From contig CAXIUT010000257.1 in assembly GCA_964035545.1 (NCBI GenBank), forward strand, positions 1 through 60,193: DNA of 60,193 bases, in the 5' to 3' direction. A program made the translations under genes and the position numbers. Shown here in pieces: positions 1-59,079 of the stretch. Every line of letters starts with the position of its first letter. Position 1 is the first letter of the stretch. Source of the stretch: Bugula neritina (taxonomy: Eukaryota > Animalia > Bryozoa). The notes under the pieces are model-generated. The model was not told the DNA's origin. It worked only from the letters and a program-made list of their open reading frames with translations, and did no database searches.

Positions 1-2153
1 CCTGAGAATGCCTGCGCCAAACGAACGATCAGCGATATGAACTTTTGCCCCTGCCCGGGTGAACCGAAAGTGGAACACAGATCCCTCAGTGCGATTTCCA
101 GAAAATCTGCTTGCTCAGGATCAAGCGCAACGGTGTATGTCCAATTCAGGTTCTCCTCTAGACCCCGATCCCGAATGACCAAAGGGGCAAAACCGGTGGT
201 CGCTCTAAGTACGACCGCTTCGTCGATTTTGTCCAATCCGAATTCTTCACGCAACCGTTCAGACAGTTCGATCTGGGAGGCCGCCCGGTTGCGTAGATCA
301 TAGGCGTCGTTCTCGTTGCCCGCTGATTCAGCCCCGCCTCCTGTCGCGCGAATATCACGCACACTGCGCGTCACCGCGCCGGTTACAAAACGTAGCCCTG
401 CGCTGACGGCCGCGGGAGTTTTTTCTTTGAAGTCAACAAGATCAATTGTGAACACATCGTCTTCGGTAGGATTGCTCAGGAACGTACGCATTGTTTCACG
501 CGCCTGTTTTGCAAACGCCAGGCGGGCTGCGCGTGCGGCATCTGTCTCGTCACTTGTGACAATTGACAGCGGGATATATTTTGTGCGGACGGCGTTAAGT
601 TCGTCGCGGACTTTGTTCAGATCTAAACTGCTTCGAGAGCCATGGTCGGCAAGGTGAATGACAAAACGCGGTCCATCTTCAAACCATCCTTGATCTGTTT
701 CAAAACGTCGGGCTTGTTGCACCACGGCTTCAAGCGCCGCTTCCTCTCGCAAACCTACCTTATCGTTAAGTCCAGCATGGCTCGAGATAACCTCGAGCGG
801 CCCCGAAAGATCGACGCCTCGGTTAATTGACCGCGAAGGCATCAAGGTTTTGGTGTCAATTGGGTCATCCAGCCCAGTGGCAGACGCTTTTTTGAAATCG
901 CTGTAGGCATAAACCGCCATGCGCATATCCGGCAGTCGCAGCGCTTCGTTAAGCCGGTCCTCGCGATATTTATCAATAAAATCAGAGATGCCTTGCCGTA
1001 CCAGCGGCAGATAGGGCCTCATGCTTTCTGTCGTGTCAACAACCAACATAACGTTGATCCGCTGAAACTCGTTCAATCGTTTGGCCAGATCGGCCTGCGA
1101 GACAAGATCGCCAGCTGCATTCGATCCTGAGCGTCCTAAGAAAATTACCTCGTGATAGGCTGGATCCTCAGGGTCGGCGAAAATGTCGCTCAAAGGATCC
1201 ACTGTGCGTACAATGGGGTAAGACAAGAGTTGCCGGTTGCCGTGGACATATTCCTCAAGTTCTTCAGCAGGCAAACCGGGACGGATGTTTGGTGCCGGTG
1301 TTCCGTCGCGCCAATTTGTAATCAAATCTCCGAGTTCTGTGAAAAGATAACCTTTGCCTGCTGCGTCATAGAACAGCCCCAAACGTGTCGGCCAAATTTC
1401 GAGTCGATTGAGCGCGATCCAGCCGAATATTCCGCTCTCTCCGTCGCCAACCAAAACGACAGGGCCGCCGGATTCATCGATATCTATATCGTGAATTTCA
1501 AGAACAGAAAAAAACGTGCGATTAGGCAGCGCTTGCCCACCACGCGCCTCGGTCCGGAACACCACTTCGCCACGGCCCGCGGCTGCATCCGACCCCAAAA
1601 GGACCCCTTTGGCACGCAACCCCGACGGAATTCCATCACACTCTAGGTCTTTTTGGTCAGGCACAAGCGTGCTGAGTTTGGTGCAAAATGTTCCTAATGG
1701 CATCGCCCGCGCAGCCTCGCATATCGGGCGGGATTTTCGTGTAAAGGTATCCAGTTTCTCGCGGCGATGTTCATCCAAAAGCGCCTTCCGCGGGACCCAG
1801 CCGCATGATGACAGATCCTTGGTTGCCACAAAAACCCGTCGCTCACTTGAAGGACCCGTTTCGGCGTAGCAATTCACCTGCGCAAACGCGCCATTTACAG
1901 TTGCGGCCGACGTTCGACTGCCAGCCAACGGGAAAAGTGGTATGCCATCCCCGATCAGCCATTGGACACCGTTTGATTGTCCTTCTAGCGTTTTTGAAAC
2001 CTCTTTACAGTCAAGGGAATCGTCGAGCTGCAAAAGTTCTTTGGATATCCCTAGATCCCTATCTTGCGCTTGACTGTACGCAACATTCGCAAAGGCGCAG
2101 ACCGTGGTTACCGCTAATGCTGACCGCATAATAATGTTTGCAAATACAGGCAT
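1..2153 (-). CDS. 5' part of the secreted vWA-domain protein (complete copy at 54416..56974)
   Basis: Lies in the duplicated segment; the ORF runs off the window edge. Confidence 0.9.
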   Translation of the reverse strand, partial: MPVFANIIMRSALAVTTVCAFANVAYSQAQDRDLGISKELLQLDDSLDCKEVSKTLEGQSNGVQWLIGDGIPLFPLAGSRTSAATVNGAFAQVNCYAETGPSSERRVFVATKDLSSCGWVPRKALLDEHRREKLDTFTRKSRPICEAARAMPLGTFCTKLSTLVPDQKDLECDGIPSGLRAKGVLLGSDAAAGRGEVVFRTEARGGQALPNRTFFSVLEIHDIDIDESGGPVVLVGDGESGIFGWIALNRLEIWPTRLGLFYDAAGKGYLFTELGDLITNWRDGTPAPNIRPGLPAEELEEYVHGNRQLLSYPIVRTVDPLSDIFADPEDPAYHEVIFLGRSGSNAAGDLVSQADLAKRLNEFQRINVMLVVDTTESMRPYLPLVRQGISDFIDKYREDRLNEALRLPDMRMAVYAYSDFKKASATGLDDPIDTKTLMPSRSINRGVDLSGPLEVISSHAGLNDKVGLREEAALEAVVQQARRFETDQGWFEDGPRFVIHLADHGSRSSLDLNKVRDELNAVRTKYIPLSIVTSDETDAARAARLAFAKQARETMRTFLSNPTEDDVFTIDLVDFKEKTPAAVSAGLRFVTGAVTRSVRDIRATGGGAESAGNENDAYDLRNRAASQIELSERLREEFGLDKIDEAVVLRATTGFAPLVIRDRGLEENLNWTYTVALDPEQADFLEIALRDLCSTFGSPGQGQKFISLIVRLAQAFS

Positions 2154-4246
2154 CAGTTTACTCCAGATCCGGAAATAGTGTCTTTTATTATGAGAACCAA
2201 TTGGTCAGACAATGCCGTCGTGTAGCGCGCTGCTACATCGACACTATCGCGCCAAGGCTCTACGATGAAGGGATAAATTGTAACGTTGAGATCGCCGTTG
2301 TCGCAAGTATATGCCCCTCCTTCGCCCAATGCTGCTGGCGAAAATCCTCTGGGCTGCAAACGGCTTGTGTCTAATGGTTTGGTGCTTGGAATATGGCGCA
2401 TGATCGAGAAAACTTTGAACTGCACAGGGACACCTGGTCGCGTGTTAAGCCGGGCTACCGCATCTGTAAACAGTTCACCTTTGCATGGGTCAACCGTCTC
2501 ATCGCTTGTATCTGGCTGGACATAGCTCAGTAATGTAACGGTCAGCGCCGTCAAACCGTCTTCCGTTGCCTTATCTTGCAGCGGAGAAATCGCTTTCTCT
2601 AGCGCTTTCGCATCAAGTGCCATCCGAGAATTGATCAGCTTCGTGCGGAAACGGTTTACCTTTTTAAACGACCCTAGAATACGGTTTCGCAGCGCATCTG
2701 AGCCGAGTTCCAATGCCTTATTGAAAACTCCGCGCCCGGACACGTTTCCCATGGTGAGATTATCCAACGACCATGCCTGGGACCCGCTTGTTTTGGACAG
2801 GCGGAAGTGTGCTGCCTGTACCGCATCCACAGATTTGCGGGCTAAATCGGCGGCATCTAACGGATCGAGCCCTAGGCGTTCTTCAAGTTCTTTCCCATCA
2901 ATCAGAAAAACATGCGCTAAAGCTTCGCGCTTCGCATCGCCAACACCAAGCCCAATTTCCAAAGTCTTCTGAACCGGCAATGTCACCTCCTGGTCAGTGA
3001 AATCACAATTCTCGACAGGTGCCACATTAACAAGGGTTGCCCGAACTTGATTTTGGTTAATCAAAAAGGGTTGTTTGATCGCTGCACCAGTACGTAAACT
3101 ACCATCAGCTTGACGCCTAGGTTCCAATTCCAATTTTGCGGCTACCCCATCGGTATCGGTATAGTGCAAATCGAATCGGCAATTTCCGTAGTTAAGCACT
3201 GCTGGAATTTTGAGAAAAACCTGCTCAGGCATTTCAACCGCCGCGCCTTCCTTGATTACCCAAGTGCCATTGTTGGACACGTCAATTCGCGCTTTTAGTG
3301 CCGTAAGTTTAGCCATCTGCGATCCACTTTCGGTGCAATCTACGCGATCTTCAAAAACGTCGGCTCCAAGCGCCAAAAGAATGCAATCCAGACGATCTAT
3401 CCCAAGATCTTGTGCATCTTCTACGCGTCCGTCGTTGTATTTAATCTTTATGTTTGGTCCACTCCTCTGTGCAGAAACCTGTGCGGATGGGGCTTTTATC
3501 TCCACTTTTAGAATGGCTTTCTTCGTTTCTCTGGTCGGTGTCGGTACTGCAGCCTTTACGAAAGACTTCATGCTCTCACAATTAACGCCACCGCAAAGTA
3601 CAAAAATTGGCATGCCTTCCTTGACGCTGGCCAATTGAAAAAATTTCTTAATGTTCTCTGATATACCGTCGGCTTTGATGCTACGACTATGTCCAACATT
3701 CCCTTTTTTCAGTCCAAGATAACGAGGTTCAGACAGGTTTTGGCTATCAAGTTTCAGAAATAGATTTGTGCCGTCAGTTTCAACTTTTCCATTGAAAAAG
3801 GCCGATATATTGAAGTTTTTGGCAGCCCACTTTTTGGCTTTCGTTTCAGCGTCAGCGGCCGTTTCAAAAGTACGTACAAGCAAGACCGGTAAACGGGTGT
3901 TATTAAGAAAACGAAATTGGTCTGGGTTAGGATCTTTGTTGGCAACAAGCTCTACAACAATCAGTTTACAACCTAATTTCACAGCGTTGCTATCACTGGG
4001 TGAATCTGTCAGCAAATATGGTTCAGTTCTAGAATCCAATATTTCTCTGACGCTCACGGGGTCGTTAGAAACTGTCCACCCAATTCGACTGAAAATCATT
4101 GCGCCAGATATCTCAGTACTCTCTAAGAAACCTGCAGAGGACAGTAAGCTTTGACAATCAAACTCATCCTGTGTTTGAGCGGTTAGCGGCCCCGACAAAG
4201 CAAACAATAATACTGTTCCAAAACTCTGAATCAATTGTTTAAGCAT
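2153..4246 (-). CDS. Secreted/periplasmic protein of unknown function, 697 aa (duplicate at 56974..59067)
   Basis: Signal peptide MLKQLIQSFGTVLLFALSGPLTA; GGAGG RBS; TGATG coupling to the vWA gene. Confidence 0.85.
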   Translation of the reverse strand: MLKQLIQSFGTVLLFALSGPLTAQTQDEFDCQSLLSSAGFLESTEISGAMIFSRIGWTVSNDPVSVREILDSRTEPYLLTDSPSDSNAVKLGCKLIVVELVANKDPNPDQFRFLNNTRLPVLLVRTFETAADAETKAKKWAAKNFNISAFFNGKVETDGTNLFLKLDSQNLSEPRYLGLKKGNVGHSRSIKADGISENIKKFFQLASVKEGMPIFVLCGGVNCESMKSFVKAAVPTPTRETKKAILKVEIKAPSAQVSAQRSGPNIKIKYNDGRVEDAQDLGIDRLDCILLALGADVFEDRVDCTESGSQMAKLTALKARIDVSNNGTWVIKEGAAVEMPEQVFLKIPAVLNYGNCRFDLHYTDTDGVAAKLELEPRRQADGSLRTGAAIKQPFLINQNQVRATLVNVAPVENCDFTDQEVTLPVQKTLEIGLGVGDAKREALAHVFLIDGKELEERLGLDPLDAADLARKSVDAVQAAHFRLSKTSGSQAWSLDNLTMGNVSGRGVFNKALELGSDALRNRILGSFKKVNRFRTKLINSRMALDAKALEKAISPLQDKATEDGLTALTVTLLSYVQPDTSDETVDPCKGELFTDAVARLNTRPGVPVQFKVFSIMRHIPSTKPLDTSRLQPRGFSPAALGEGGAYTCDNGDLNVTIYPFIVEPWRDSVDVAARYTTALSDQLVLIIKDTISGSGVN

Positions 4247-4258
4247 TAAACCGTCCTC

Positions 4259-5095
4259 CTATTCGAAAATGACAATATGCGCCGCATCGGAATTGTTGCG
4301 CGGAGCCAAGCGGATCATTTGGCCTGTACGATCACGAGCACAAAGATTTGGGACGTCATTTTCCCACACCCAGATCACGCGTCTAAGAGCTTTTTGACTT
4401 CCGTCCTGCGCGATCATCCAATCAAGACCCTGTTCACACTGCTTCACGCTTAACCGCGGGATTCCAACACGCAATGAATTGATGTTTTTGGCTGTGGTGA
4501 GAGATAGCCGCGCGTTATCCCCCAAATAGCTGAAACCTGGATCAGGAGAGATCTCGAACGCGGCCAACCGCGCTTCGAGCTGCACAACGCGGGTTTCAGC
4601 CTTGAGGCGCTTATCGAGCTCGACTCTCAATTCATCGGTCCGCGCTGTCAACTGGTTCGCAAGGCGATTGACTTCGGCGCTCATTTCGCTCGTTGCTTCA
4701 TTCTCTTTGGGGTCGTCACTAAAGGATGTGCAAGCTTCCAACCGATCATTCAAATTCAGATTCGAGCGACGGGCCTGCTGCCTGTCTTCTTTGCAAAATG
4801 TGATTTCTTCTTGCAGCAACTGTAACTGTGCGTCGTCAACACCGCAGCTATCTGCGGGTGGCTCCAAAGACGCCATTGACGAAAGCATCAAGACAAGTTG
4901 GGCCTTGTCTGACGTACAGGACGCGAGGGCCAGCTGCGTCGCTGTTTTGGAGTCCGTTGTATTTTCAGCAGTCCCAACGGCTGTGGGTTCGGTCATTTGT
5001 TGGTCGCTTGTCGGTTCTGTTTCTTGCGCAGCAATGAATGTGGTGAAATTCAATCCCAAAATTGTAGCGCAAACAATGCGTCCGAATTGTATCAT
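4259..5095 (-). CDS. Secreted coiled-coil protein (likely start 5095, MIQFGR...; duplicate at 59080..59916)
   Basis: AGGA RBS overlapping the ABC gene's end; signal peptide; heptad-rich segment EVNRLANQLTARTDELRVELDKRLKAETRVVQLEARL. Confidence 0.8.
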   Translation of the reverse strand: MIQFGRIVCATILGLNFTTFIAAQETEPTSDQQMTEPTAVGTAENTTDSKTATQLALASCTSDKAQLVLMLSSMASLEPPADSCGVDDAQLQLLQEEITFCKEDRQQARRSNLNLNDRLEACTSFSDDPKENEATSEMSAEVNRLANQLTARTDELRVELDKRLKAETRVVQLEARLAAFEISPDPGFSYLGDNARLSLTTAKNINSLRVGIPRLSVKQCEQGLDWMIAQDGSQKALRRVIWVWENDVPNLCARDRTGQMIRLAPRNNSDAAHIVIFE

Positions 5096-5099
5096 GGCG

Positions 5100-7463
5100 T
5101 TATTCCTGTAAATATTTCTTAAGCTGGTTGCGGGTTTGTCGCCACCAGATCGCAACGACCAATGCGGTAATAATAGCCGTCGCGGCCCCCAGCTTGACAA
5201 CAGATTGTGTAAAGCCCACTTCGGCATAGTCCCAAATTGACCCCAGATTAGGCGGTAGAGCAGGCATTAGGAAATACAAAGCGAGCGCGCCGTATCCGAC
5301 AAAGAAAACCAAAGCGAAGATAAAGGCGGGTATAAGATGGCAAAAAATGGCCCAAAAGATATCTAAAAAGCCTGCACCGTGGGCAATGAAAAGAGCGAGC
5401 ACGCGTTTGTTGAGTTCCAGAATATTGTTGATGACAAGGAACACGAGCATTGCGCATCCAAATAGGCTCATCCAGACAATGACGGGCGGCACACGGTGCG
5501 CCAATCGCGAGATATTCTGAAGCGTTTTGACCGCCGCTGCACTGTCATCGCGCACACGGTAATGACTGTCCTGAATCACATCACGCGCGTTTTCAAACCC
5601 ATCAATCGGGAAATAGGCGGTTGCGATATTAAACGGCCGCGGTGAGTAACCTGTTTGCAGCCCCGCCGCCCGTTGGAAATCATGTTCGAAAATGATGATC
5701 TCTGCTTGCGACGGATATAGCGGTGGGGGCAAAGCAATGGAGCCTCGGATTTCAAGTTCTATCGGTGCGGTGCGACCGCCCTGCCCCGCAGCCCATTGCA
5801 CAATGATTGGGCTGTCTATCGGATGGCCGCAACGCTCGATAAGCGTATCGACATAGAATTGGTCAAGCATGGCAATTCCAAGCGGGTTATCAAAATTGGT
5901 TTCATCCGCGCGCGCCTCGGAAATGATGACGTCTGGCACATCGGTAAGGCCCGCTTCGCCACTGGATTTGACAAGCTGCGTTTGGCGGACCAATGGATCG
6001 TGCGCGTTCAGTGCAACGGTTTGCAACGGCAGCCAACGATTGCAGCCCGCCTCTGGCGATCTGAAACGTATTGCTGAACCACTGACCGATCGTCTTCCAT
6101 AAACCGAGACGCGTTCTATTTCCTGCGCGGAGGTTCCTTTGGTCTTTAACGCGCTGGCTATTTTGTCGCGTATAGTAGGCACAGTGCTATCGCCATACAG
6201 CTGTTGAGGCGCGTCGTCGGCGTTTTCGTCGGCAGGCACAATGTATTCAAAGACAATGCGCGCCACTGACGGGTCCTGCAATTGGGCGTCACTATAGGAT
6301 TGCGCAAGACGGCCAAAACCTTCGACCGCAGCGATTTGCGCCAACAGAATGCACAGAACAAAACCAAAAGAATATCGGCTGTAACTGAGCAAGCGAAGCA
6401 GCCAAGACCGGACCCTGTTTTCCTTCACCGGCTTGCCAGTCACCAGCCCCAACGTCCGCAAAAGAGATCGGGGGGCAAGGTGTGGATGATTGGTTCGCTC
6501 TCCACGCGGAGACAGCCATTCCTCGTAAGACAAAGCGTTCGCGATCCAACCGGAAAATTGCCACCTGCCAGGTGCAATAACACGGTCTTCGGTCGGTTCC
6601 GCCGCAGCCTGCGTGGTGTTGTTTTTGGCGTGTGTGTTAATATCCTGGCTGATGTCCCGTAAAACGGTGAGCCGCTCTGCCCAGGTTTCGGTCCCGAATG
6701 GATCAAGATCCGACGCCTCGTCTTCTTCGTATTTAATGGCCAGAGCGAAATTTTGCGCTTCGGTCGGTTCTACGACGCGCCCGTCAGCGACGAAAACGAA
6801 ATGATTTGCAAAGCGCGCGGCATGTTCCAGATTATGCGTCACCCAAAGAACGGGCCGCCCAGTTTCATCCGACCATGCCTGCAGCGCTTCCATTGCATAT
6901 GTTGCCGTACGTTCATCTAGGCTGGATGTTGGCTCATCACACAGAATTGCGCGCGGGTTCATCGACAAGGCGCGCATAATCGCGATGCGCTGCGCTTGCC
7001 CGCCACTTAATTGATTGGCCTTCTTTCCGACCAAACTGTCTGACCCATCCTGTAGATCAAGTTTTTCCAAGGCGCGGCGTAACTTGGACAATCCGAGGGG
7101 TGGATTATCTGCATCTGGCACCCGCGAAACTTGACCCTGTAAAACATTCAACAGGCCACTGCCCACACCAAGGAGCATCGGGTTTTGGAAAACGAAAGAC
7201 ACCAGCCCCGGGGCAACACCTGAGTGCGAGATATCGCGGCCCTCGAATGTGAAATGACCACCATCTTTAATCTGTGGTGTCAAAAAGCCAGCAAGAATCG
7301 ACAGCAGCGTCGTCTTGCCCGATCCCGAGTGCCCAATAATGGCCGTCACACCTGTCGGATTAATGTCAAGGTTTTCGACGATAATCCCATGCACCCGCGT
7401 GCTATCGGTCTCTACTTTTTTGTTGTTGTAGAGATAGCAAACGTCTTTCAATGAATATGACAT
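5100..7463 (-). CDS. Fused ABC ATPase + FtsX/MacB-type permease (TagT/TagS- or MacB-like)
   Basis: Walker A GHSGSGKT, signature LSGGQ, Walker B ILCDEP, H-loop VTHN; then one TM, a large periplasmic loop and three C-terminal TMs. Confidence 0.9.
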   Translation of the reverse strand: MSYSLKDVCYLYNNKKVETDSTRVHGIIVENLDINPTGVTAIIGHSGSGKTTLLSILAGFLTPQIKDGGHFTFEGRDISHSGVAPGLVSFVFQNPMLLGVGSGLLNVLQGQVSRVPDADNPPLGLSKLRRALEKLDLQDGSDSLVGKKANQLSGGQAQRIAIMRALSMNPRAILCDEPTSSLDERTATYAMEALQAWSDETGRPVLWVTHNLEHAARFANHFVFVADGRVVEPTEAQNFALAIKYEEDEASDLDPFGTETWAERLTVLRDISQDINTHAKNNTTQAAAEPTEDRVIAPGRWQFSGWIANALSYEEWLSPRGERTNHPHLAPRSLLRTLGLVTGKPVKENRVRSWLLRLLSYSRYSFGFVLCILLAQIAAVEGFGRLAQSYSDAQLQDPSVARIVFEYIVPADENADDAPQQLYGDSTVPTIRDKIASALKTKGTSAQEIERVSVYGRRSVSGSAIRFRSPEAGCNRWLPLQTVALNAHDPLVRQTQLVKSSGEAGLTDVPDVIISEARADETNFDNPLGIAMLDQFYVDTLIERCGHPIDSPIIVQWAAGQGGRTAPIELEIRGSIALPPPLYPSQAEIIIFEHDFQRAAGLQTGYSPRPFNIATAYFPIDGFENARDVIQDSHYRVRDDSAAAVKTLQNISRLAHRVPPVIVWMSLFGCAMLVFLVINNILELNKRVLALFIAHGAGFLDIFWAIFCHLIPAFIFALVFFVGYGALALYFLMPALPPNLGSIWDYAEVGFTQSVVKLGAATAIITALVVAIWWRQTRNQLKKYLQE

Positions 7464-7464
7464 G

Positions 7465-7956
7465 CTACAAGTAACCCCTTCCCGATCTTACCAATATGAC
7501 AGCCAGCGCAACCGCAAGCAGCCCGGATACTATAAAAAGTGCACGCGACGTCGACGTTACCAGCCCGCCATGACCCATGAGCGGTACAATAAATCCGCTG
7601 AACCAAATGACGGCGAATACGATTGCGCGGTCACGCTGCAAGCCTACATTACGAGCAACAAACGCACCGCCTGCGGCCACAATAACCCATGCGATAATCG
7701 CAGACGTGAAATTTACGGAGAACGATATCCAGCCAACCGGAACAGGCCAACCGCTGATTAAATCAATCCCGAACGGCCCGATACTCACAGACACTGCGTA
7801 CCAAAGCAGCACCCATACCCCGATAGCGAGGCCAAGGCCCACGCTGGTTAATAGGGCCGTGCGTGGTCTTTTGCTCAGCAAAACTAAACCTGCGATCGCA
7901 AGTGCTGCCGCAAAAGGCGGGGCGAAGGAAATTGGATCACTCTGTTGGAGTATCAT
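7465..7956 (-). CDS. Small multi-pass membrane protein (about 5 TM)
   Basis: 163 aa, almost entirely hydrophobic; overlaps the upstream gene and abuts the ABC gene. Confidence 0.75.
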   Translation of the reverse strand: MILQQSDPISFAPPFAAALAIAGLVLLSKRPRTALLTSVGLGLAIGVWVLLWYAVSVSIGPFGIDLISGWPVPVGWISFSVNFTSAIIAWVIVAAGGAFVARNVGLQRDRAIVFAVIWFSGFIVPLMGHGGLVTSTSRALFIVSGLLAVALAVILVRSGRGYL

Positions 7957-8920
7957 TGAAGCGACCCTCCAGCAGTGAAAGCTCTGACATCATCGGCGCG
8001 GCGCAACTGACGTTTTTTTGGATTTTGGATAAGTCCGACATCGCCTGCGTGTGCACAGCTTTGTCGCCAACAACCACGGCCAAAAGCCCCAAGGCAAAAT
8101 GCCGCCAAGACGCCATTTCTGGGGAAATTTGGCGCACGACCTGCTCTGCCAAATCCCGATCAAGGGCGAAAGCCAAATGTCCAAGCATCAAAGGGCATGC
8201 GCCCGCCTCGGAGAGATCAAGGATCCGGTCGGAAAAGTCGCCAATGATCTTGGGGCACTGGCTGTTACCCTGCTCCCAAGGTTTGGCGCGCATCCACCCC
8301 AACACACGCCAGCTGAGAACCTGAAAACTTAATGGATCAGCCTTCTGCGCCTCGTCTAAGCGCAGCAACAGGTCACTGGACCATGCCTTTGACGACTGGT
8401 CGTTGGCTGTGACAATGGACCAAAAAAGCCGATCTGAACGCAGGCTATCCGGCACGTCTGATTGAGCCGCAAACTGGTCAATAAAGGCTCTCGCTTCAGC
8501 GTATTTTCCAAACTGGATTGCTGTTAAAATAAGTTGATTTTCAAGTACTTGTCTTTGATTTACAGACAGTTGCCCCGCGTCGAGCCCATCGTTCAGAAGA
8601 CCAATCGCAACCTCATAGTCACGCGCAAAACTGGCGAAAGATACTGCGCGCCGGACGTCTTCTGGCATGGGATTCAGCGTGATCTGCTCGCGCATTGTTG
8701 CAGTATCTCCAAAACGGACCAGAGACTGACTACAGCCCTTTTCGATCTGCGACTCTATCCGGCGTGTATCGACGATAGGCTGCGGCACGACAGTGACAAT
8801 GCGTGCCCATTCCAGATTGGTGCGCACCCATTGGGTTTGCGGTGCCGCAAGCTGGTCTGCCAACGTCACCGATCCAAGTCCCATTACCAGAGCCGTAGAA
8901 GTGATACGCGCAATCTTCAT
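7937..8920 (-). CDS. Secreted all-helical, TPR-like protein
   Basis: Signal peptide; TPR-like helices (DYEVAIGLLNDGL, GKYAEARAFIDQF, LDEAQKADP); ATGA overlap with the upstream gene. Confidence 0.7.
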   Translation of the reverse strand: MKIARITSTALVMGLGSVTLADQLAAPQTQWVRTNLEWARIVTVVPQPIVDTRRIESQIEKGCSQSLVRFGDTATMREQITLNPMPEDVRRAVSFASFARDYEVAIGLLNDGLDAGQLSVNQRQVLENQLILTAIQFGKYAEARAFIDQFAAQSDVPDSLRSDRLFWSIVTANDQSSKAWSSDLLLRLDEAQKADPLSFQVLSWRVLGWMRAKPWEQGNSQCPKIIGDFSDRILDLSEAGACPLMLGHLAFALDRDLAEQVVRQISPEMASWRHFALGLLAVVVGDKAVHTQAMSDLSKIQKNVSCAAPMMSELSLLEGRFNDTPTE

Positions 8921-9549
8921 CGGAAAACACTTTGCGAGGTGAAACTGCGGGGTGACAGGACAAGCACAAGTTTCAAAAGTTCGTCTGCTTTTGGGGCCTT
9001 GACCAAGGCATAGCGAAGCCGAATATCACAGGCCTGGCTTAGGCCCGACAAAGGCGCAAGATCGTCCACATCCGATACCAAAAAGACGGTTAGCTGAGAA
9101 CGCAATCCTTGGGGGCATTCGATGCCCCGCGCTAGATCCAACTTTGCCCGCACCCACGGCTCAGGCGGGGCCACTGGATCGACGTACAGCTGCAGGGATG
9201 ACGCATTTGGCACAGCTTTATAGCGCGAGCTGGTGGAAAAGATGGCATCACCGCTTGGGCCAGCGTAGGCCGCATCGGGTTCCTGAAGTCCTAAGGCAAC
9301 GGCCGACATATTAAGGACAGTCAACGCGCCACCCGTATAGATCGCGAAATCGCCACGCTCCCTGACGGCCTTCCAGCCCGAACTGTTCAGTTCTTGCGTC
9401 ATGTTCTGTTGCGCAATGGATTCAACATTTACGCGCGGTTCTTCGACAACGATGCTGAATTTTATGAATACGAATAAAACAAGGATCGAACAGAAAAAGG
9501 TAATCGCCAAATCGATCGATGCAGTGTCCAGATCGCTTTCATTTTCCAT
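8917..9549 (-). CDS. Single-TM MotB/ExbD/TolR-like protein #2 (likely start 9549)
   Basis: MENESDLDTASIDLAITFFCSILVLFVFIKF: Asp at the start of one TM helix, followed by a periplasmic domain; overlaps the stop of partner #1. Confidence 0.6.
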   Translation of the reverse strand: MENESDLDTASIDLAITFFCSILVLFVFIKFSIVVEEPRVNVESIAQQNMTQELNSSGWKAVRERGDFAIYTGGALTVLNMSAVALGLQEPDAAYAGPSGDAIFSTSSRYKAVPNASSLQLYVDPVAPPEPWVRAKLDLARGIECPQGLRSQLTVFLVSDVDDLAPLSGLSQACDIRLRYALVKAPKADELLKLVLVLSPRSFTSQSVFR

Positions 9550-10000
9550 CCGGCAACTCCATATTTGCCAAGGAAACGACATATACAGACCGCGACCCAG
9601 AATCGGCGCGCGGGATGTCATCAAGATTAGAGTTCCGCGTCGCCACAAGTTCCTTTGAAATAAACGTATAGCAACGCCCTGTAATCACGCCGCGCTCGTC
9701 GGGGACAACCGCCAAAAGGTAGTAGGGTTTTGCGCTCATGTCCATTCGATCGGGAAGGTTCGCCAGATCGCTTGCTTGCGCTACAGGCATGGCATCGGCG
9801 GCAATTCGATCTGCGGGCCAAACCAGCGCGTTTGTAATGACCTCATTGTCAGTTTGTGCGGGGCACGTCGCAAGGAAATCGGCCTGAAGCGGAATTGGCT
9901 GGGGTTCGAAAGGTTGAGACACCGCAAGGACCATCAACAAGGCCGCGGCCGCAGAAATGAATAGGTCCGTCATCGCCAAGCCAGCTGATTGACCGATCAT
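9539..10000 (-). CDS. Single-TM MotB/ExbD/TolR-like protein #1
   Basis: LAMTDLFISAAAALLMVLAV: TM helix with an Asp at the canonical position; ATGA-coupled to the MotA-like gene. Confidence 0.6.
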   Translation of the reverse strand: MIGQSAGLAMTDLFISAAAALLMVLAVSQPFEPQPIPLQADFLATCPAQTDNEVITNALVWPADRIAADAMPVAQASDLANLPDRMDMSAKPYYLLAVVPDERGVITGRCYTFISKELVATRNSNLDDIPRADSGSRSVYVVSLANMELPDGK

Positions 10001-10488
10001 GCCGAGGCGGTCTTGATTGCAAGATGGCTCACTGTTCGAAAGATCATCAACAAAACTGACGACGTCAGCCCAAGAAAGGTTGTGTCGAACGCGGTCGATA
10101 GTCCTCCAATCAAAGCCGCTGGATCACCTTCGCCCATCGCAGTCTCAAGCCCGCCAACAGCCAGCGACACACCAATGATTGTCCCTAGAAAGCCCAAGGA
10201 CGTGAACAGAGTTTGACCCCACAACGTGAACATATCATAGGCTGCGGCACCGGATTGACCCCGACGCATCGCTACAACGGCATGAAGCGGCATCGCCAGC
10301 AAACCACTCAGCAACGCGCCTTGATAAACGCTTTGGAAACTGCGCGACAAAACACCGCCCAGATATCCGCTCTCGGCAAAACGCTGATGATCTAGCCCAT
10401 TGGCAGCAGCGAGCCAAAGAAGACCCGCCACCAGCATGGTCATACCAATCGCATCAAGGAAAACGCGTGCTCGAATTTCCATTTTCAT
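9997..10488 (-). CDS. MotA/TolQ/ExbB proton-channel family protein, minimal (163 aa)
   Basis: Family motifs TSLGFLGTIIGV and GGLSTAFDTTFLGL in the last two TMs. Confidence 0.85.
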   Translation of the reverse strand: MKMEIRARVFLDAIGMTMLVAGLLWLAAANGLDHQRFAESGYLGGVLSRSFQSVYQGALLSGLLAMPLHAVVAMRRGQSGAAAYDMFTLWGQTLFTSLGFLGTIIGVSLAVGGLETAMGEGDPAALIGGLSTAFDTTFLGLTSSVLLMIFRTVSHLAIKTASA

Positions 10489-10505: not shown

Positions 10506-11132
10506 TTACTGAGTCACACCATCCAGCAGGCTTTCGGCTAGAACTTTACCGTTTTCGACAATGCTCGAAAATTCATTGACGTTATTGCGGATGGATTGTG
10601 CGGCAAGCTGCACCTGATTTGCCTTGATGAAAAACACGAGCGCGTCATCATTTTCTTCGAGCGTGCGCAGCAAGTTGCGCGCCTCTACCACAGTCGATGA
10701 ACGCTTGCGGTCATCAGACTCCAAGTCATCCAACGTTTTCTCCAACCCCGGAATCGCGGTTTTAATAGCACTGTTGTTAGAGGCTTCTGCTTCGGCAATC
10801 AAGGCAAGCGTTTCCTCCTTATACTTGTCGATCGCCAGATCAAATGTAGATCCATCCTCCATCTGGGTTGTCGCTTCTTTCAGATCAGCAATAAGCCCAG
10901 AAACGCGTTCTTGAGCCTGCTCGATTTCGACCAACCCTTTTTCGAGTTCTTCCAGAAAAGGCGGGAACGCCTCGGTGCGGGATTGCAGTTGTTCCATCAG
11001 TGATTTGATCTGTGCAGCACTGGCCTCAACTTGGTCTTCCGCTGACTGTGCCCATGCACCTTGTGCCGCAAATGGCATGGCCAAAGACGCACAAACGGCA
11101 ACTCGCATGCCAAAATCCAACAGTTTAGTCAT
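10506..11132 (-). CDS. Secreted long coiled-coil protein
   Basis: AAGGAG RBS; signal peptide ending AWA; acidic heptad repeats throughout. Confidence 0.85.
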   Translation of the reverse strand: MTKLLDFGMRVAVCASLAMPFAAQGAWAQSAEDQVEASAAQIKSLMEQLQSRTEAFPPFLEELEKGLVEIEQAQERVSGLIADLKEATTQMEDGSTFDLAIDKYKEETLALIAEAEASNNSAIKTAIPGLEKTLDDLESDDRKRSSTVVEARNLLRTLEENDDALVFFIKANQVQLAAQSIRNNVNEFSSIVENGKVLAESLLDGVTQ

Positions 11133-11208: not shown

Positions 11209-12042
11209 TCAGCTTTCGCAGAAGGCAACATAGAGTCGAACAATGCCACGGATCGTTCCAGCCGCGTTTTCCAAGGTCTTTACAGAGGTCGTCAGACTCG
11301 AAATTTCGACTTTCAATCCTTCTAGCTTTTGCTCCGATCCTCGAACCAATTTATCAACCAAATCGTCCGCAGTCCCTTCGGTTTTGTACCCGCGCACGAC
11401 GTTCTCCCAGTCTGTCTGGCATTGCTGCACATCTTGGGCTTGACGCTGAAGAGAGCGCAAGTTTGCCGGATTTTCGGAGGCCAGTTTGAAGCTGGCGCTA
11501 AGATCTTCTCGTGTAAATCCGCACAACGCTTCGCGCTCGCTTACGTCTCCATAATCTCGAGTAAGCAATTCACCATAGGTTGAAAGTTCGGATTTGATGT
11601 CCGTGATAAGCAGTGCGGATCGCCCTTCAAGTTCCACAACCGTGGATGAGCACGCGGGTGCAAGCTTAGCCAACTCACATTCTTCTTGCTCGAAGATATC
11701 ACCAAGCTTGGAACAGTCCACTCCCGACTCCGTTACTGGCTCCGACACGACGACCTCAGCAGGTTGTGTATCGCCTTCGGCTTTTCCACCAAGCAGCGAC
11801 GCACATGTCGCATTGTCTTTCGCATTTGCGCGCCCCTGTTCGTCAAAGAAGTTTGCGACGCAGAATGACACATTGCTCGACAGGAAATCTTCATTTCCGC
11901 AAGAAAATTGGGCGCAAGTTGCAGGACAGGTCGACTGCATCTCCGTGTTAGAGCAAATGTCGATGTTAGCTTGAGCCTGAACCAAAGTTCCAAAAAAAGC
12001 AAAAAAAATAGCGGAAACACTAAATCGCAGCAAAAAATTCAT
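11209..12042 (-). CDS. Secreted protein with Cys-rich N-terminus and coiled coil; first gene of the envelope operon (likely start 12042)
   Basis: GAGGG RBS before MNFLLRFS; signal peptide ending AQA; many Cys; C-terminal heptads. Confidence 0.8.
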   Translation of the reverse strand: MNFLLRFSVSAIFFAFFGTLVQAQANIDICSNTEMQSTCPATCAQFSCGNEDFLSSNVSFCVANFFDEQGRANAKDNATCASLLGGKAEGDTQPAEVVVSEPVTESGVDCSKLGDIFEQEECELAKLAPACSSTVVELEGRSALLITDIKSELSTYGELLTRDYGDVSEREALCGFTREDLSASFKLASENPANLRSLQRQAQDVQQCQTDWENVVRGYKTEGTADDLVDKLVRGSEQKLEGLKVEISSLTTSVKTLENAAGTIRGIVRLYVAFCES

Positions 12043-12240
12043 AATTAGCCCTCTTTTCCTGAACAACAGGTAAGCGTTAATTTTAAAGGAACGCAAGGTG
12101 TTAGTATGACATGAACCGGATCACGAGAGGAATTGCGTACGGTCAAAATTGCCAAATTCATCAAGGGGCGGATTACGCGGTTTCACTTTAACTATTTGAC
12201 TTAACGTTAGTTTATCACCTTTAATGGCATTTTAATTATT

Positions 12241-12717
12241 CTATTCTGCTCTGGTTTTCAAATCCCAGGCTGGCCATTTCTGTATATAAAAAGAAGGCGT
12301 CGGTGCACGAATAAAAGTGGTCCCACTAACTCGGACAGCTTTACGGCCTTTGGTTCGGGTGAACAGATACGCACGGCGCCGCTTGCCAGAGACAGATATC
12401 CAATGCGCCACCGCCTTGCGGCTCACGCCGGTCAGCTCTGGATGCACGGGCTTCGCGGTCTTTCTTTGCTTTGCCGAGATCTTACTGCGCACCTGGCCGT
12501 TTGAGCAGCAAACATCGCGCACCTGAAGGTTTAGCAGATCGACCGAGCGCAACATGCTGTCCAGCGCCAGCGACAGGAGCGCATAGTCGTGCCACTGTTC
12601 TTGCTTGATCAGCCAGATCGAGAGCTGGCGAATTTCCGCTGCGGTGAAGTGGACTTTGACCCCTTGCGATCGGTCCTTGTTCCAGCCCGCGCCGTTCAAG
12701 CGGTGTTTTTTTCTCAT
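12241..12717 (-). pseudogene. Truncated tyrosine recombinase (N-terminal half of the catalytic domain)
   Basis: WNKDRSQGVK...DYALLSLALDSMLRSVDLLNL...QRKT; C-terminal HxxR and Tyr motifs are absent. Confidence 0.75.
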
Positions 12718-21366: not shown

Positions 21367-22304
21367 TCCTGAAATCTCTAGGTCATAAAACCCGCTCATT
21401 CGGAAAGCTCTTGGCCTATGTGGCGCGCGGCGCTGCGCAGGACGGCGCGGCAAAGAACAGAACTGACCAAAACAACGCACAAGAATGCGCAGGCAAGCCT
21501 GCTGTTTTCAGCCGTAACCTGATGGTTGATCCAAACGATCTGGCCGCAGTGGAGCAGGCATTTGAGCAAAACGCACGGTTTTTGCGTCCGCGCCAAGGTG
21601 GCAATTGGTGCTATCATGAGATTATCGCACTGCCGGAGCCGGTGAAGGAAAAAGACAAGGCGGCGGTGGAGGCAATGCTGTTTGAGCTGGCAGTTCAGTA
21701 CGTCAAAGGACGTGCACCGCGCCAGCTGGTTTGGGGGCAGGTTCATTGGGAAACCAAGCATCCGCATTTGCATCTGGTGATCTCTGCCAATGAGGTCAGA
21801 TCCCCGCGCCGGGTCCGACTGCCCAAAGCGCGCTTTACCCAGCTCATTGAAGAGCTGGAGGTATTCAAATGCGCGCGCTGGCCTGAAGTACTGCCGGAAA
21901 AGCTTTGGCAGCACCGCAAGCACTACAATCAAAAGCGCCGCAGCCATGCAGAGGATCATCTGACACGTCGCACGGGCCGCGCGTCCAAGCGCGCTGAGTT
22001 GGCCGAGACACTGTCGGAGATCTTTACCCGCGCTCGCTGGATTGATGATGTGAGGCATGCGCTGAGCGAAAAAGGCCTGGCGCTTTACCGACGAGGCCGC
22101 ACCTGGGGCGTACTGCAGCAAGCCAGTGGCAAGCGCCACCGCTTGAGCCGTCTAGGGCTGTTCAGCGCCTTTGAGGCGATGGCACAGCGCATGCAGATCT
22201 TAGAACATCGTTTGGATCAGTTGACAGAGAGGCGCACCACCGGCACCGAGCATGCAACGGGGCGCGAAAGAGTTACCAAACCATATAACCCATTAAGACT
22301 ATGA
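21363..22304 (+). CDS. Relaxase (MOB_P/VirD2-like HUH)
   Basis: MILKS...LLAYV, YHEIIAL, VHWETKHPHLHLVISAN. Confidence 0.88.
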   Translation: MILKSLGHKTRSFGKLLAYVARGAAQDGAAKNRTDQNNAQECAGKPAVFSRNLMVDPNDLAAVEQAFEQNARFLRPRQGGNWCYHEIIALPEPVKEKDKAAVEAMLFELAVQYVKGRAPRQLVWGQVHWETKHPHLHLVISANEVRSPRRVRLPKARFTQLIEELEVFKCARWPEVLPEKLWQHRKHYNQKRRSHAEDHLTRRTGRASKRAELAETLSEIFTRARWIDDVRHALSEKGLALYRRGRTWGVLQQASGKRHRLSRLGLFSAFEAMAQRMQILEHRLDQLTERRTTGTEHATGRERVTKPYNPLRL

Positions 22305-31272: not shown

Positions 31273-31444
31273 CTTTAATCTCCACAGCGGGAAATGAGCT
31301 TCCCAAAACGCTAATTTTTCAACGATTTCATGATGTCCGCCGGAAGCGGTGAAAGGCAAGACGCAATATGTCCTGCCAAGTAGATTTACCTATGATGGCG
31401 AGCAAAGTAGCTAATCCTAAATCCATTTTAGCCGTTAATACGTC

Positions 31445-47508: not shown

Positions 47509-48555
47509 CTATCGATAAACAATTCTGCAGTCATAAAGTAATCCAATGATATTTCTTTTGCAAAGGCGGACTCGCTTTTTGGCCTTTCTATTGGCCTTGC
47601 GTTTGGGTTGAGGCTTGAACGCTGCTCTATTTCTAGAGTCCTGCAACCATTCATCTAACGCAGTCTGAGATTTCTTTTTCAAGGCCAAGAGTTGAGACTC
47701 ATTCAAATAACCTGTGGGCTCTGTGTTTACAGTAGCTTGCCAAGCCCGAATAGCTGAACGTGTTCCGTTGCCTATAGCACCATCTACTCCGTTTGGGTCA
47801 TGCCCGATTACTAATAGGCGAGTTTGAATGTCTCGGATGGCTTGTTTGCTCAGATTTAGCTCTTGCTCCATTCTCTCTGAACCGACGGGCATCACAGCAA
47901 TGGTCACAGTTTTGATTGAAGCTAGTTCACCATCGGTCTCGGCAGGTGAAGTCACTAAGGCCACAAGGGATAGTATTCCGGTCTCGGATGTTTTCAGTAG
48001 AAAGGACGCTCCATCACCTTTGTTCGCATAAGGAGCGCATTCTTCGAGGACAGCAACAATCTGAAGGTATTGCAGTCTTGCTCTAGAGCTAGGGCTTTCT
48101 GGCTCAATAATCTCTGGAAGGTCGAAGAGGTTCCCACCTGCATCCACAGAAAACCCGATCAACATGTTGACACTGGGCTTTTCCGCTACCGCAGTCGTCA
48201 GGCACATCTCTTTGTCATTCGGTTGAGACTGAACAGCGGCTTGATTCAGAACGATTTCGCTATCCGACGCAGCTTTCAGTCTATCCTCAAAGGCAGCGAA
48301 AACGATACCGTCATAGGATTCACCAAGCAAAATGCTCACAGCTGCGTCTGAGGCCGGAAAGTTGTCTATTATCAGCTGAACCTTGGTGATGGCTTCTTGC
48401 AGTTCGTCAATGGAAGCCCCTTCATTCTCTTGCACTGCCTTCAAATCAGCCAAAGCGGTTTCTACGCTGTCCTGGGCGGCAACAAAGCTACTCAAAGCAA
48501 CGCAGATCACACACGACCACATTAATAAGAACCTTGATCTGACCATGCGCTTCAC
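47509..48555 (-). CDS. Secreted peptidoglycan-binding domain protein
   Basis: Signal peptide; DIQTRLLVIGHDPNGVDGAIGNGTRSAIRAWQ...TGYLN. Confidence 0.85.
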   Translation of the reverse strand: MKRMVRSRFLLMWSCVICVALSSFVAAQDSVETALADLKAVQENEGASIDELQEAITKVQLIIDNFPASDAAVSILLGESYDGIVFAAFEDRLKAASDSEIVLNQAAVQSQPNDKEMCLTTAVAEKPSVNMLIGFSVDAGGNLFDLPEIIEPESPSSRARLQYLQIVAVLEECAPYANKGDGASFLLKTSETGILSLVALVTSPAETDGELASIKTVTIAVMPVGSERMEQELNLSKQAIRDIQTRLLVIGHDPNGVDGAIGNGTRSAIRAWQATVNTEPTGYLNESQLLALKKKSQTALDEWLQDSRNRAAFKPQPKRKANRKAKKRVRLCKRNIIGLLYDCRIVYR

Positions 48556-54415: not shown

Positions 54416-56974
54416 CTATCGTTCAAAGAAATCTTCGAACCCACCGGACCCTGCCTGTTCTTCAATCTGCGAGGGTAGAACGAAGAAGAAACCAGGAACG
54501 AACACAGTTTCACTACCGATAACGGGGCGGTATTTGTAGATCCGTGATGTCGCTGTTTCACCGTCCTTGAGATCAAATTCCCGACCCGTCCAGACCAGTT
54601 GGCTGGGCTTTGCATAAAGTTCTGCTCGCATCATGTTTGTAAAGTGATAGCTTGTCCAGCACACGTCGCGGCGCAGCTTGTTCGCCACCTCGGAATCAGC
54701 GCTTTCAACACGTGCTCTCAGCAGGCGCGGCTCTTGCGACAGGAAACTCTGATCGGCACCCGGCAAACTGCCCACGTCAGACAGCACCGCATAAAGATCG
54801 CTTAGATCCTGAACATCGTCACCTGAGAATGCCTGCGCCAAACGAACGATCAGCGATATGAACTTTTGCCCCTGCCCGGGTGAACCGAAAGTGGAACACA
54901 GATCCCTCAGTGCGATTTCCAGAAAATCTGCTTGCTCAGGATCAAGCGCAACGGTGTATGTCCAATTCAGGTTCTCCTCTAGACCCCGATCCCGAATGAC
55001 CAAAGGGGCAAAACCGGTGGTCGCTCTAAGTACGACCGCTTCGTCGATTTTGTCCAATCCGAATTCTTCACGCAACCGTTCAGACAGTTCGATCTGGGAG
55101 GCCGCCCGGTTGCGTAGATCATAGGCGTCGTTCTCGTTGCCCGCTGATTCAGCCCCGCCTCCTGTCGCGCGAATATCACGCACACTGCGCGTCACCGCGC
55201 CGGTTACAAAACGTAGCCCTGCGCTGACGGCCGCGGGAGTTTTTTCTTTGAAGTCAACAAGATCAATTGTGAACACATCGTCTTCGGTAGGATTGCTCAG
55301 GAACGTACGCATTGTTTCACGCGCCTGTTTTGCAAACGCCAGGCGGGCTGCGCGTGCGGCATCTGTCTCGTCACTTGTGACAATTGACAGCGGGATATAT
55401 TTTGTGCGGACGGCGTTAAGTTCGTCGCGGACTTTGTTCAGATCTAAACTGCTTCGAGAGCCATGGTCGGCAAGGTGAATGACAAAACGCGGTCCATCTT
55501 CAAACCATCCTTGATCTGTTTCAAAACGTCGGGCTTGTTGCACCACGGCTTCAAGCGCCGCTTCCTCTCGCAAACCTACCTTATCGTTAAGTCCAGCATG
55601 GCTCGAGATAACCTCGAGCGGCCCCGAAAGATCGACGCCTCGGTTAATTGACCGCGAAGGCATCAAGGTTTTGGTGTCAATTGGGTCATCCAGCCCAGTG
55701 GCAGACGCTTTTTTGAAATCGCTGTAGGCATAAACCGCCATGCGCATATCCGGCAGTCGCAGCGCTTCGTTAAGCCGGTCCTCGCGATATTTATCAATAA
55801 AATCAGAGATGCCTTGCCGTACCAGCGGCAGATAGGGCCTCATGCTTTCTGTCGTGTCAACAACCAACATAACGTTGATCCGCTGAAACTCGTTCAATCG
55901 TTTGGCCAGATCGGCCTGCGAGACAAGATCGCCAGCTGCATTCGATCCTGAGCGTCCTAAGAAAATTACCTCGTGATAGGCTGGATCCTCAGGGTCGGCG
56001 AAAATGTCGCTCAAAGGATCCACTGTGCGTACAATGGGGTAAGACAAGAGTTGCCGGTTGCCGTGGACATATTCCTCAAGTTCTTCAGCAGGCAAACCGG
56101 GACGGATGTTTGGTGCCGGTGTTCCGTCGCGCCAATTTGTAATCAAATCTCCGAGTTCTGTGAAAAGATAACCTTTGCCTGCTGCGTCATAGAACAGCCC
56201 CAAACGTGTCGGCCAAATTTCGAGTCGATTGAGCGCGATCCAGCCGAATATTCCGCTCTCTCCGTCGCCAACCAAAACGACAGGGCCGCCGGATTCATCG
56301 ATATCTATATCGTGAATTTCAAGAACAGAAAAAAACGTGCGATTAGGCAGCGCTTGCCCACCACGCGCCTCGGTCCGGAACACCACTTCGCCACGGCCCG
56401 CGGCTGCATCCGACCCCAAAAGGACCCCTTTGGCACGCAACCCCGACGGAATTCCATCACACTCTAGGTCTTTTTGGTCAGGCACAAGCGTGCTGAGTTT
56501 GGTGCAAAATGTTCCTAATGGCATCGCCCGCGCAGCCTCGCATATCGGGCGGGATTTTCGTGTAAAGGTATCCAGTTTCTCGCGGCGATGTTCATCCAAA
56601 AGCGCCTTCCGCGGGACCCAGCCGCATGATGACAGATCCTTGGTTGCCACAAAAACCCGTCGCTCACTTGAAGGACCCGTTTCGGCGTAGCAATTCACCT
56701 GCGCAAACGCGCCATTTACAGTTGCGGCCGACGTTCGACTGCCAGCCAACGGGAAAAGTGGTATGCCATCCCCGATCAGCCATTGGACACCGTTTGATTG
56801 TCCTTCTAGCGTTTTTGAAACCTCTTTACAGTCAAGGGAATCGTCGAGCTGCAAAAGTTCTTTGGATATCCCTAGATCCCTATCTTGCGCTTGACTGTAC
56901 GCAACATTCGCAAAGGCGCAGACCGTGGTTACCGCTAATGCTGACCGCATAATAATGTTTGCAAATACAGGCAT
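54416..56974 (-). CDS. Secreted vWA (MIDAS) domain protein, 852 aa
   Basis: Signal peptide; NVMLVVDTTESMRPY (DxTxS), AVYAYSD, EEAALEAV, FVIHLADHGS. Confidence 0.85.
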   Translation of the reverse strand: MPVFANIIMRSALAVTTVCAFANVAYSQAQDRDLGISKELLQLDDSLDCKEVSKTLEGQSNGVQWLIGDGIPLFPLAGSRTSAATVNGAFAQVNCYAETGPSSERRVFVATKDLSSCGWVPRKALLDEHRREKLDTFTRKSRPICEAARAMPLGTFCTKLSTLVPDQKDLECDGIPSGLRAKGVLLGSDAAAGRGEVVFRTEARGGQALPNRTFFSVLEIHDIDIDESGGPVVLVGDGESGIFGWIALNRLEIWPTRLGLFYDAAGKGYLFTELGDLITNWRDGTPAPNIRPGLPAEELEEYVHGNRQLLSYPIVRTVDPLSDIFADPEDPAYHEVIFLGRSGSNAAGDLVSQADLAKRLNEFQRINVMLVVDTTESMRPYLPLVRQGISDFIDKYREDRLNEALRLPDMRMAVYAYSDFKKASATGLDDPIDTKTLMPSRSINRGVDLSGPLEVISSHAGLNDKVGLREEAALEAVVQQARRFETDQGWFEDGPRFVIHLADHGSRSSLDLNKVRDELNAVRTKYIPLSIVTSDETDAARAARLAFAKQARETMRTFLSNPTEDDVFTIDLVDFKEKTPAAVSAGLRFVTGAVTRSVRDIRATGGGAESAGNENDAYDLRNRAASQIELSERLREEFGLDKIDEAVVLRATTGFAPLVIRDRGLEENLNWTYTVALDPEQADFLEIALRDLCSTFGSPGQGQKFISLIVRLAQAFSGDDVQDLSDLYAVLSDVGSLPGADQSFLSQEPRLLRARVESADSEVANKLRRDVCWTSYHFTNMMRAELYAKPSQLVWTGREFDLKDGETATSRIYKYRPVIGSETVFVPGFFFVLPSQIEEQAGSGGFEDFFER

Positions 56975-59067: not shown

Positions 59068-59079
59068 TAAACCGTCCTC

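Follow-up and report, generated by a model that had tools for sequence, protein, structure and literature searches.

We describe here a putative membrane motor encoded on a 60,193-nucleotide contig filed under the bryozoan Bugula neritina (CAXIUT010000257.1 of GenBank assembly GCA_964035545.1); this whole stretch of DNA is referred to below as the window. Three adjacent genes on its minus strand encode a small polytopic membrane protein, A, and two dissimilar single-pass membrane proteins, B1 and B2, and together the trio looks like a divergent Ton/Tol-like proton-driven motor. By analogy with relatives of solved structure, A, B1 and B2 probably constitute the inner-membrane proton-driven energiser, a ring with an axle of the ExbBD/TolQR type, of a conserved 11-gene envelope system. 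As judged from their junctions, the three genes are translationally coupled: A and B1 overlap by an ATGA, as do B2 and the gene that follows it, g06, and the overlap of B1 with B2 is 11 nucleotides (nt).

On its profile matches, the polytopic component is a genuine MotA/ExbB/TolQ-family protein. Residues 95-153 of A match the Pfam model PF01618 (MotA_ExbB) with 27.6 bits against a cut-off of 22.9, and a six-frame search of the genome gives 28.3 bits for the same model. The best NCBIfam and PADLOC matches of A are to the transmembrane core of type II ZorA (ZorA2-type hidden Markov models (HMMs), E 4e-8, residues 58-153). Among 36 family members and the sister families described below, the residues G99, F100, G102, T103 and A133, F134, D135, T136, T137, F138 are invariant. 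The pore motifs GF(L/I)GT and AFDTTFLGL are maintained across three tiers of A relatives and align with TM3-TM4 of MotA (6ykm), the core transmembrane pair that lines the pore. A length of 163 amino acids had been given for A in a first-pass annotation of the window, and this reading holds; homologues of A recovered by word search fall into 81 clusters of 158-189 amino acids, with five outliers of 117-221.

A has no sizeable cytoplasmic domain such as provides the torque interface in MotA, the helical bundle in ExbB/TolQ and the tail in ZorA. Averaged over the family, the hydropathy of A peaks four times, around residues 20, 65, 103 and 141; segments 2 and 3 are joined by a loop of 13 residues on average, and the mean length of the C-terminal tail is 11. 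Sister A families, which are 219-291 amino acids long, carry a charged insert of 50-100 residues between segment 2 and the core as well as a longer C-terminal tail. Both are absent from A, and therefore the first-pass annotation was correct in assigning it almost no cytoplasmic domain between the second and third transmembrane helices. The minimal cytoplasmic part of A looks, in the alignments, like a secondary loss. Under either a four-helix or a three-helix model, the part of A that faces the cytoplasm comprises a few dozen residues per chain at most.

B1 and B2 each possess a single N-terminal transmembrane helix with a conserved aspartate near its cytoplasmic end. A word-based protein search returned just two close relatives of each, and their orthologues were for that reason taken from the loci surrounding A homologues. 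The first-pass annotation had pointed to an aspartate in each of two different single-pass proteins, in the motif AMTDLF of B1 and ASIDLA of B2, and had made its proposal depend on their conservation; both residues are present, and their conservation is clear. D12 of B1 is invariant in 21 orthologues and in all 29 sequences when sister systems are included. D13 of B2 is likewise invariant in 21 orthologues, and when 26 or 54 sequences are aligned no column but this one is invariant. Searching 1.84 billion representative sequences with a profile yielded 184 relatives of B2, approximately 200-250 amino acids long except for a few short fragments, and 141 of 142 full-length representatives retain the aspartate, the next best column reaching 76%. 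The mechanical list of open reading frames (ORFs) opens B2 at TTG 9648, within B1; we place its start at ATG 9549, giving 210 amino acids, because orthologues measure 205-228 amino acids and a GGAG lies 9 nt upstream.

Apart from D12, the sole conserved columns of B1 are C46 and C110 (28 of 29 sequences), and in B2 C145 and C174 are invariant in the 21 orthologues. Such invariant cysteine pairs in the C-terminal domains fit a periplasmic location of these domains. Within the B2 helix there is no conserved pattern of histidine or serine and no Ser-His-Leu-Ser (SHLS) motif of the kind found in TonB/TolA. The extreme C-terminus of B2 (positions 8917-8925) reads Phe-Arg in 20 of 21 orthologues, with the terminal arginine invariant; its conservation suggests a docking motif.

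Structural predictions point weakly to a known class of periplasmic domain, more clearly for B1. The AF2 (AlphaFold2) model of B1, with a predicted local distance difference test (pLDDT) value of 86.7 and an N-terminal helix at residues 5-28, has as its top match among 48,161 Protein Data Bank (PDB) chains the TolR protein of E. coli (5by4; Z 5.1, 82 residues, root-mean-square deviation 3.4). In an independent library, the ESM-Atlas, its top shape match is a PF02472 ExbD cluster (template-modelling score 0.45), and some of the B1-like proteins of the sister systems give sub-threshold matches to Pfam ExbD. The B1 model is thus suggestive of a periplasmic domain of the TolR/ExbD type. The B2 model (pLDDT 77.9; N-terminal helix at residues 3-32) is compatible with a domain of this type: it matches TolR 5by4 with Z 5.6, level with folds of the ribosomal S11 and YqgF type, and ExbD 2pfu with Z 4.2. 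The absence of a recognisable OmpA-like domain from both proteins, noted at first pass, was upheld: neither contains an OmpA-like, MotB or other domain in Pfam (E<=1), NCBIfam or PADLOC, no OmpA/MotB-C fold is found among the structural matches of either, and 54 diverse members of the B2 family match no Pfam family.

Several observations weigh against regarding the trio as a motor of this kind. B1 and B2 lack statistically supported sequence homology to ExbD, TolR or MotB. An ExbD model applied to five host genomes recovers the canonical ExbD genes and misses B1 and B2; hhalign comparison of both proteins with an ExbD/TolR alignment from the host genomes gives probabilities of 0.7-8%, restricted to the transmembrane segment; hmmsearch against PDB sequences finds nothing significant; and Foldseek finds no match to the PDB for either model at E<=0.001. 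Common beta-alpha arrangements give structural Z values of this size (about 5), and similar scores were obtained for ribosomal S11 and YqgF-like folds. The side-chain volumes of the transmembrane helices (2505 cubic angstroms for B1, 2713 for B2 and 2785 for ExbD) do not favour a heterodimer over homodimers. Finally, segment 2 of A (residues 54-75, peak 1.6) only reaches the usual hydropathy threshold, and the positive-inside rule gives the same lysine-plus-arginine balance for four-helix and three-helix models. The earlier count of about four transmembrane helices in A is matched by the four hydropathy peaks and left without discrimination by the charge distribution; four helices are likely on the sequence evidence. 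In favour of such a motor, the aspartates of B1, B2 and ExbD fall in one register in the weak profile alignments. Homology between B1 and B2 was also considered and rejected: hhalign gives 0.4-21%, confined to the transmembrane segment, and the two are treated here as unrelated or diverged beyond recognition. Each is clearly homologous to its counterpart in the sister systems (96.8% and 96.4%, respectively).

The trio pattern does not arise by chance, because the gene order is conserved in about 20 loci. An orthologue of A is present in 15 of 185,579 species genomes, in 14 of them with flanking block genes and in one, Hoeflea, as a decayed remnant; the carriers of A include Rhodobacterales, Blastochloris, Competibacterales, Thiotrichales and Desulfobacterales. 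All loci with enough flanking sequence (about 20 syntenic loci) contain the same 11 genes in the same order, encoding two secreted coiled-coil proteins, A, B1, B2, a tetratricopeptide repeat (TPR)-like protein, a small polytopic protein, an ATP-binding cassette (ABC)-ATPase/FtsX protein, a coiled-coil protein, a Cys-rich protein of about 700 amino acids and a vWA (von Willebrand factor A) protein of about 850 amino acids. A, B1 and B2 co-occur 1:1:1 in these loci and in the sister systems, and neither B gene is found alone except in the decayed Hoeflea copy. In that copy, on the chromosome of a Hoeflea metagenome-assembled genome (L019:9905-11621), A is intact (a 200-amino-acid ORF), B1 is a fragment, the N-terminal Asp helix of B2 is fused to transposase-like sequence, and no other block genes lie nearby. 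The neighbours of the block are often integrases, resolvases, insertion sequence (IS) elements or a type I restriction-modification gene.

Sister systems were found at eight loci (L021, L022, L023, L026, L028, L030, L031 and L080) in Chromatiales, Competibacteraceae, Desulfobacteraceae, Aminicenantes and others. Coiled-coil proteins come first in their gene order, followed by a longer A (219-291 amino acids), proteins like B1 and then B2, and a TPR protein. An Oceanobacillus assembly contains L031, a contig of high GC that looks like contamination there. Distant relatives of A in Planctomycetota and Kuenenia are likewise accompanied by two Asp-helix genes.

In the mechanism that we propose, A would form a ring, pentameric as in every solved relative, whose pore would be lined by the last two helices of each chain, where Thr103 and Asp135-Thr136-Thr137 are invariant. 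This pore would receive the single helix of B1 and that of B2, and alternate protonation of their invariant aspartates from the periplasm would convert proton flow into relative rotation. We infer the stoichiometry of the ring, its rotation and the occupancy of its pore from solved relatives (PMC9389320, PMC11946911). Since A is nearly devoid of a cytoplasmic part, work would have to be delivered through the periplasmic domains of the B proteins to co-encoded periplasmic proteins, or laterally in the membrane. A periplasmic output, which the first-pass annotation took to be necessary, is a reasonable expectation, and delivery within the membrane, to the polytopic neighbour or the permease of MacB type, is possible. 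As a working guess, the whole system may be a machine for trans-envelope assembly or export, powered both by ATP, through the MacB-like transporter, and by the proton-motive force.

If the trio is an energiser, the chances that its pore holds one B1 and one B2 are, in our estimation, close to evenly balanced. This arrangement, the 5:1:1 motor proposed at first pass, is favoured by the strict 1:1 co-occurrence of the two genes, by their translational coupling and by the equal depth and conservation of their aspartates. We can offer only tentatively, and as a doubtful proposition, the most specific form of this idea, in which an obligate pair of one B1 and one B2 would make an asymmetric 5:1:1 motor with the smallest known A subunit, and its two dissimilar periplasmic heads would link the flow of protons to a TssR-like vWA protein and an ABC transporter of the MacB type within an undescribed, horizontally mobile trans-envelope machine.

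An alternative arrangement, which we judge unlikely, is that a B1 homodimer alone serves as the axle (A5:B1x2) and that B2 stands beside the ring as a force transducer or regulator, the counterpart of TonB/TolA. The order A-B1-B2 does match tolQ-tolR-tolA, the clearer TolR/ExbD-like fold belongs to B1 alone, and the two proteins have no detectable mutual homology. The near-universal aspartate of B2, however, lies at the same depth as that of B1, and keeping an acidic residue buried against lipid would carry a cost; B2 is also without the SHLS-type Ser/His motif by which TonB/TolA engage the outside of the ring (PMC12204202). Less probable still are two alternative homodimeric motors built on one type of A ring (A5:B1x2 and A5:B2x2), each with its own periplasmic partner. 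Homodimeric axles occur in all solved 5:2 motors (PMC9389320, PMC11946911), and a pair of B2 helices would still be less bulky than a pair of ExbD helices, but at every locus the B1 and B2 genes are strictly 1:1 and translationally coupled, and stand alone only in the decayed Hoeflea copy. That the trio is a Zorya-like anti-phage sensor, with a ZorA-type ring detecting envelope damage, is very improbable: ZorA2 models are the best HMM matches of A and the block lies on a plasmid or beside integrases, IS elements or a type I restriction-modification gene, yet the A chain stops 13 residues past its last helix and so has no ZorA tail, B1 and B2 lack the peptidoglycan-binding domain of ZorB, genes of the ZorC/D/E type or for nucleases are missing from the block, six of its 11 products have signal peptides and numerous conserved cysteines, and PADLOC applied to g01, g02, B1, B2 and g06-g09 yields, on g08 and g02, only matches of a generic kind (ABC-ATPase/P-loop and coiled-coil).

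The energiser reading can be set against the systems that it most resembles. As in ExbB-ExbD and TolQ-TolR, A belongs to the same Pfam family and its B partners are small, N-in single-pass proteins with an aspartate in the membrane and no OmpA-like domain; the predicted periplasmic domain of B1 has the TolR/ExbD shape, and output would be on the periplasmic side. A TPR protein is encoded nearby, as in the Tol system (compare CpoB/YbgF). In contrast to these systems, A has about 160 amino acids rather than about 230-245 and no cytoplasmic helical domain, and the ExbD model does not find B1 and B2, between which no relationship is detectable. The block also differs from Ton and Tol in that it has no TonB/TolA-type SHLS protein, TonB-dependent receptor or TolB/Pal, and is linked to a MacB-like ABC transporter.

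One A-type gene with two different B-type genes is also the composition of AglR-AglQ-AglS, the gliding motor of Myxococcus, in which one TolQ-like and two TolR-like subunits are present, as the first-pass annotation had stated and as agrees with PMC9389320; whether AglQ and AglS form hetero- or homodimers is there said explicitly to be unknown. AglQ and AglS are recognisable TolR homologues and mutual paralogues, and AglR has a cytoplasmic domain, in all of which they differ from the present proteins; B1 and B2 are unlike both AglQ/AglS and ExbD1/ExbD2 in having no mutual homology. None of the 11 block products has a Pfam or NCBIfam match suggesting a Glt partner, Glt models not having been searched specifically. 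The arrangement of one A with two B genes, described at first pass, is indeed found here but is less unusual than was implied. Canonical ExbB followed by two different ExbD genes occurs in four operons of two host genomes, Marinibacterium sp. SX1 and Tropicibacter alexandrii (Table 1), and clusters of TolQ-like genes with heterologous TolR-like pairs have been described in the Planctomycetes-Verrucomicrobia-Chlamydiae (PVC) group (PMC12204202). It is thus a common and already known arrangement.

Like the block, the PVC clusters combine a ring protein and two Asp-helix partners that differ from each other with TPR and vWA proteins. There, vWA proteins with an Asp-bearing 'transpore helix' form heterologous pairs, and TonB/TolA are described as binding the outside of the ring through a transmembrane SHLS motif (PMC12204202). 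The vWA protein of the present block, g11, has a signal peptide that looks cleavable and not a membrane anchor with SHLS or an Asp helix; in addition, A is far smaller than the PVC ring proteins, and coiled-coil proteins and an ABC transporter are further components of the block. ZorA-ZorB provides the closest HMM match for the three C-terminal helices of A, and TM2 and TM3 of ZorA line the B helices (PMC11946911). The 70-nm tail, the membrane-proximal cytoplasmic domain, the peptidoglycan-binding ZorB domain and the effectors of Zorya are all absent here, and the lack of tail, peptidoglycan-binding domain and effectors makes a Zorya-type role unlikely. A loose precedent for proton-channel-type genes in one operon with an ABC transporter is SiiA-SiiB, a MotAB-like proton-conducting pair encoded with the ABC exporter of the type I secretion system (T1SS) of Salmonella pathogenicity island 4 (SPI4) (10.1101/641415) and counted among the 5:2 motors (PMC12204202). 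SiiA, however, contains a peptidoglycan-binding domain like that of MotB, the operon has one B gene, and the SPI4 ABC protein is a T1SS exporter with a membrane fusion protein and a TolC-like protein rather than of the MacB/FtsX type. The features that set the present system apart are the extreme reduction of A, B families missed by the ExbD model, a secreted TssR-like vWA protein and the linkage to a MacB-like transporter.

The remaining members of the block form with the trio a tight minus-strand operon that runs from about 12042, over the junction of a circular replicon (see below), to 54416 (Table 1). Signal peptides are carried by six of the 11 products, and conserved cysteines are numerous. 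The protein directly upstream of A, g02, is syntenic in 18 loci and has weak Pfam matches of coiled-coil type only. The counterpart of g06 in the sister systems matches TPR_2/TPR_16. In g08, ABC_tran matches residues 31-180 with E 1.5e-25, and FtsX matches residues 661-783 with E 0.0015, under the Pfam cut-off (19.1 against 25.5 bits); its orthologue at locus L088 has PF02687 FtsX on record. The protein has the organisation of a MacB-type (type VII) ABC transporter, an N-terminal ATPase followed by an FtsX-type permease with a large periplasmic loop. No recognisable family or structural look-alike turned up for g10. The last product, g11, bears a cleavable-looking signal peptide; VWA_2 is weakly matched by nine of 15 orthologues, the motif D373-x-T375-E376-S377 is invariant, and ESM-Atlas feature matches of 0.97-0.98 lead to TssR/VWA clusters.

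Table 1. Positions of the block genes and of candidate members in the window, and of ExbB-ExbD-ExbD operons in host genomes.
Feature	Position	Strand	Description
g01	11209..12096	-	secreted Cys-rich and coiled-coil protein; first in block; likely start ATG 12042
g02	10506..11132	-	208-aa secreted coiled-coil protein directly upstream of A; signal-peptide-like N-terminus
A	9997..10488	-	163-aa MotA/ExbB/TolQ-family protein; four hydrophobic segments; no cytoplasmic domain or tail
B1	9539..10000	-	153-aa single-pass protein; Asp12 near cytoplasmic end of transmembrane helix; TolR/ExbD-like predicted periplasmic domain
B2	8917..9549	-	210-aa single-pass protein; Asp13 in transmembrane helix; disordered linker of ~30 residues; larger predicted periplasmic domain
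g06	7937..8920	-	327-aa secreted helical-repeat (TPR-like) protein; invariant cysteines; ATGA-coupled to B2
g07	7465..7956	-	163-aa polytopic membrane protein; position conserved, sequence poorly conserved
g08	5100..7463	-	787-aa ABC ATPase fused to FtsX-type permease (MacB-like architecture)
g09	4259..5227	-	coiled-coil protein, secreted or anchored; likely start ATG 5095, ~278 aa
g10	2153..4246	-	697-aa secreted protein; 11 invariant cysteines
g11	54416..56974	-	852-aa secreted TssR-like vWA-domain protein; last and best-conserved block gene, beyond circle junction
g12-g14	53282-54346, 48552-52571, 47509-48555		candidates for membership downstream of g11
ExbB-ExbD-ExbD operons	G001:C1:3509586-3510877, 3701225-3702397, 2050211-2051353; G003:C33:295896-297163		canonical ExbB followed by two different ExbD genes

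Three genes downstream of g11 (g12-g14) were considered as further members of the system and rejected, as they have no counterpart downstream of g11 in Marinibacterium. One of the products of this region (48552-52571, minus strand) is a secreted protein of 1339 amino acids that belongs to no family, and its end is overlapped by a gene for a secreted protein with a PG_binding_1 domain (47509-48555, minus strand).

The replicon that carries the block is a bacterial plasmid. Window positions 1-5372 and 54822-60193 are identical over 5372 bp with 0 mismatches, and therefore the contig is a closed circle of 54,821 bp that was assembled with an overlap; it lies inside a much larger assembly of 216 Mb in 321 contigs. 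The circle encodes a replication-type gene, a primase-like Toprim protein, a type IV secretion system (T4SS) coupling protein, an IS66 transposase and a large helicase-nuclease. None of the 72,556 plasmids in PLSDB codes for a protein related to g11 or to the replication protein. The T4SS coupling protein is of the TraG/VirD4 type (22301-23851, plus strand), and a HerA/TrwB-like ATPase (32498-34462, minus strand), a complete IS66 transposase (39397-40998, plus strand) and a truncated tyrosine integrase (12241-12717, minus strand) are also present; the plasmid looks mobilisable and reshaped by mobile elements. A protein of 1987 amino acids (25396-31359, minus strand) combines DUF4011, superfamily 1 helicase domains (AAA_11/AAA_12), an MTES_1575 restriction-endonuclease-like domain and DUF3320, and looks like a large helicase-nuclease of the defence or plasmid-maintenance type.

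If the trio assembles as proposed, A would be the most reduced ring subunit described for motors of the MotA/ExbB/TolQ type, a chain of about 160 residues that consists essentially of transmembrane helices. Such a minimal subunit would be a convenient object for studying the structure and mechanism by which proton flow is converted to rotation, and the system would allow a clean decision on whether one pore can accommodate two unlike B subunits, a question that is explicit for AglRQS and implied for the numerous ExbB-ExbD-ExbD operons. Each of B1 and B2 defines a protein family that Pfam does not cover. The 11-gene block to which they belong is rare and mobile and pairs an ATP-driven MacB-like transporter with a putative proton-driven motor, and its carriers include the cultured bacteria Marinibacterium profundimaris, Tropicibacter alexandrii and Blastochloris sulfoviridis.

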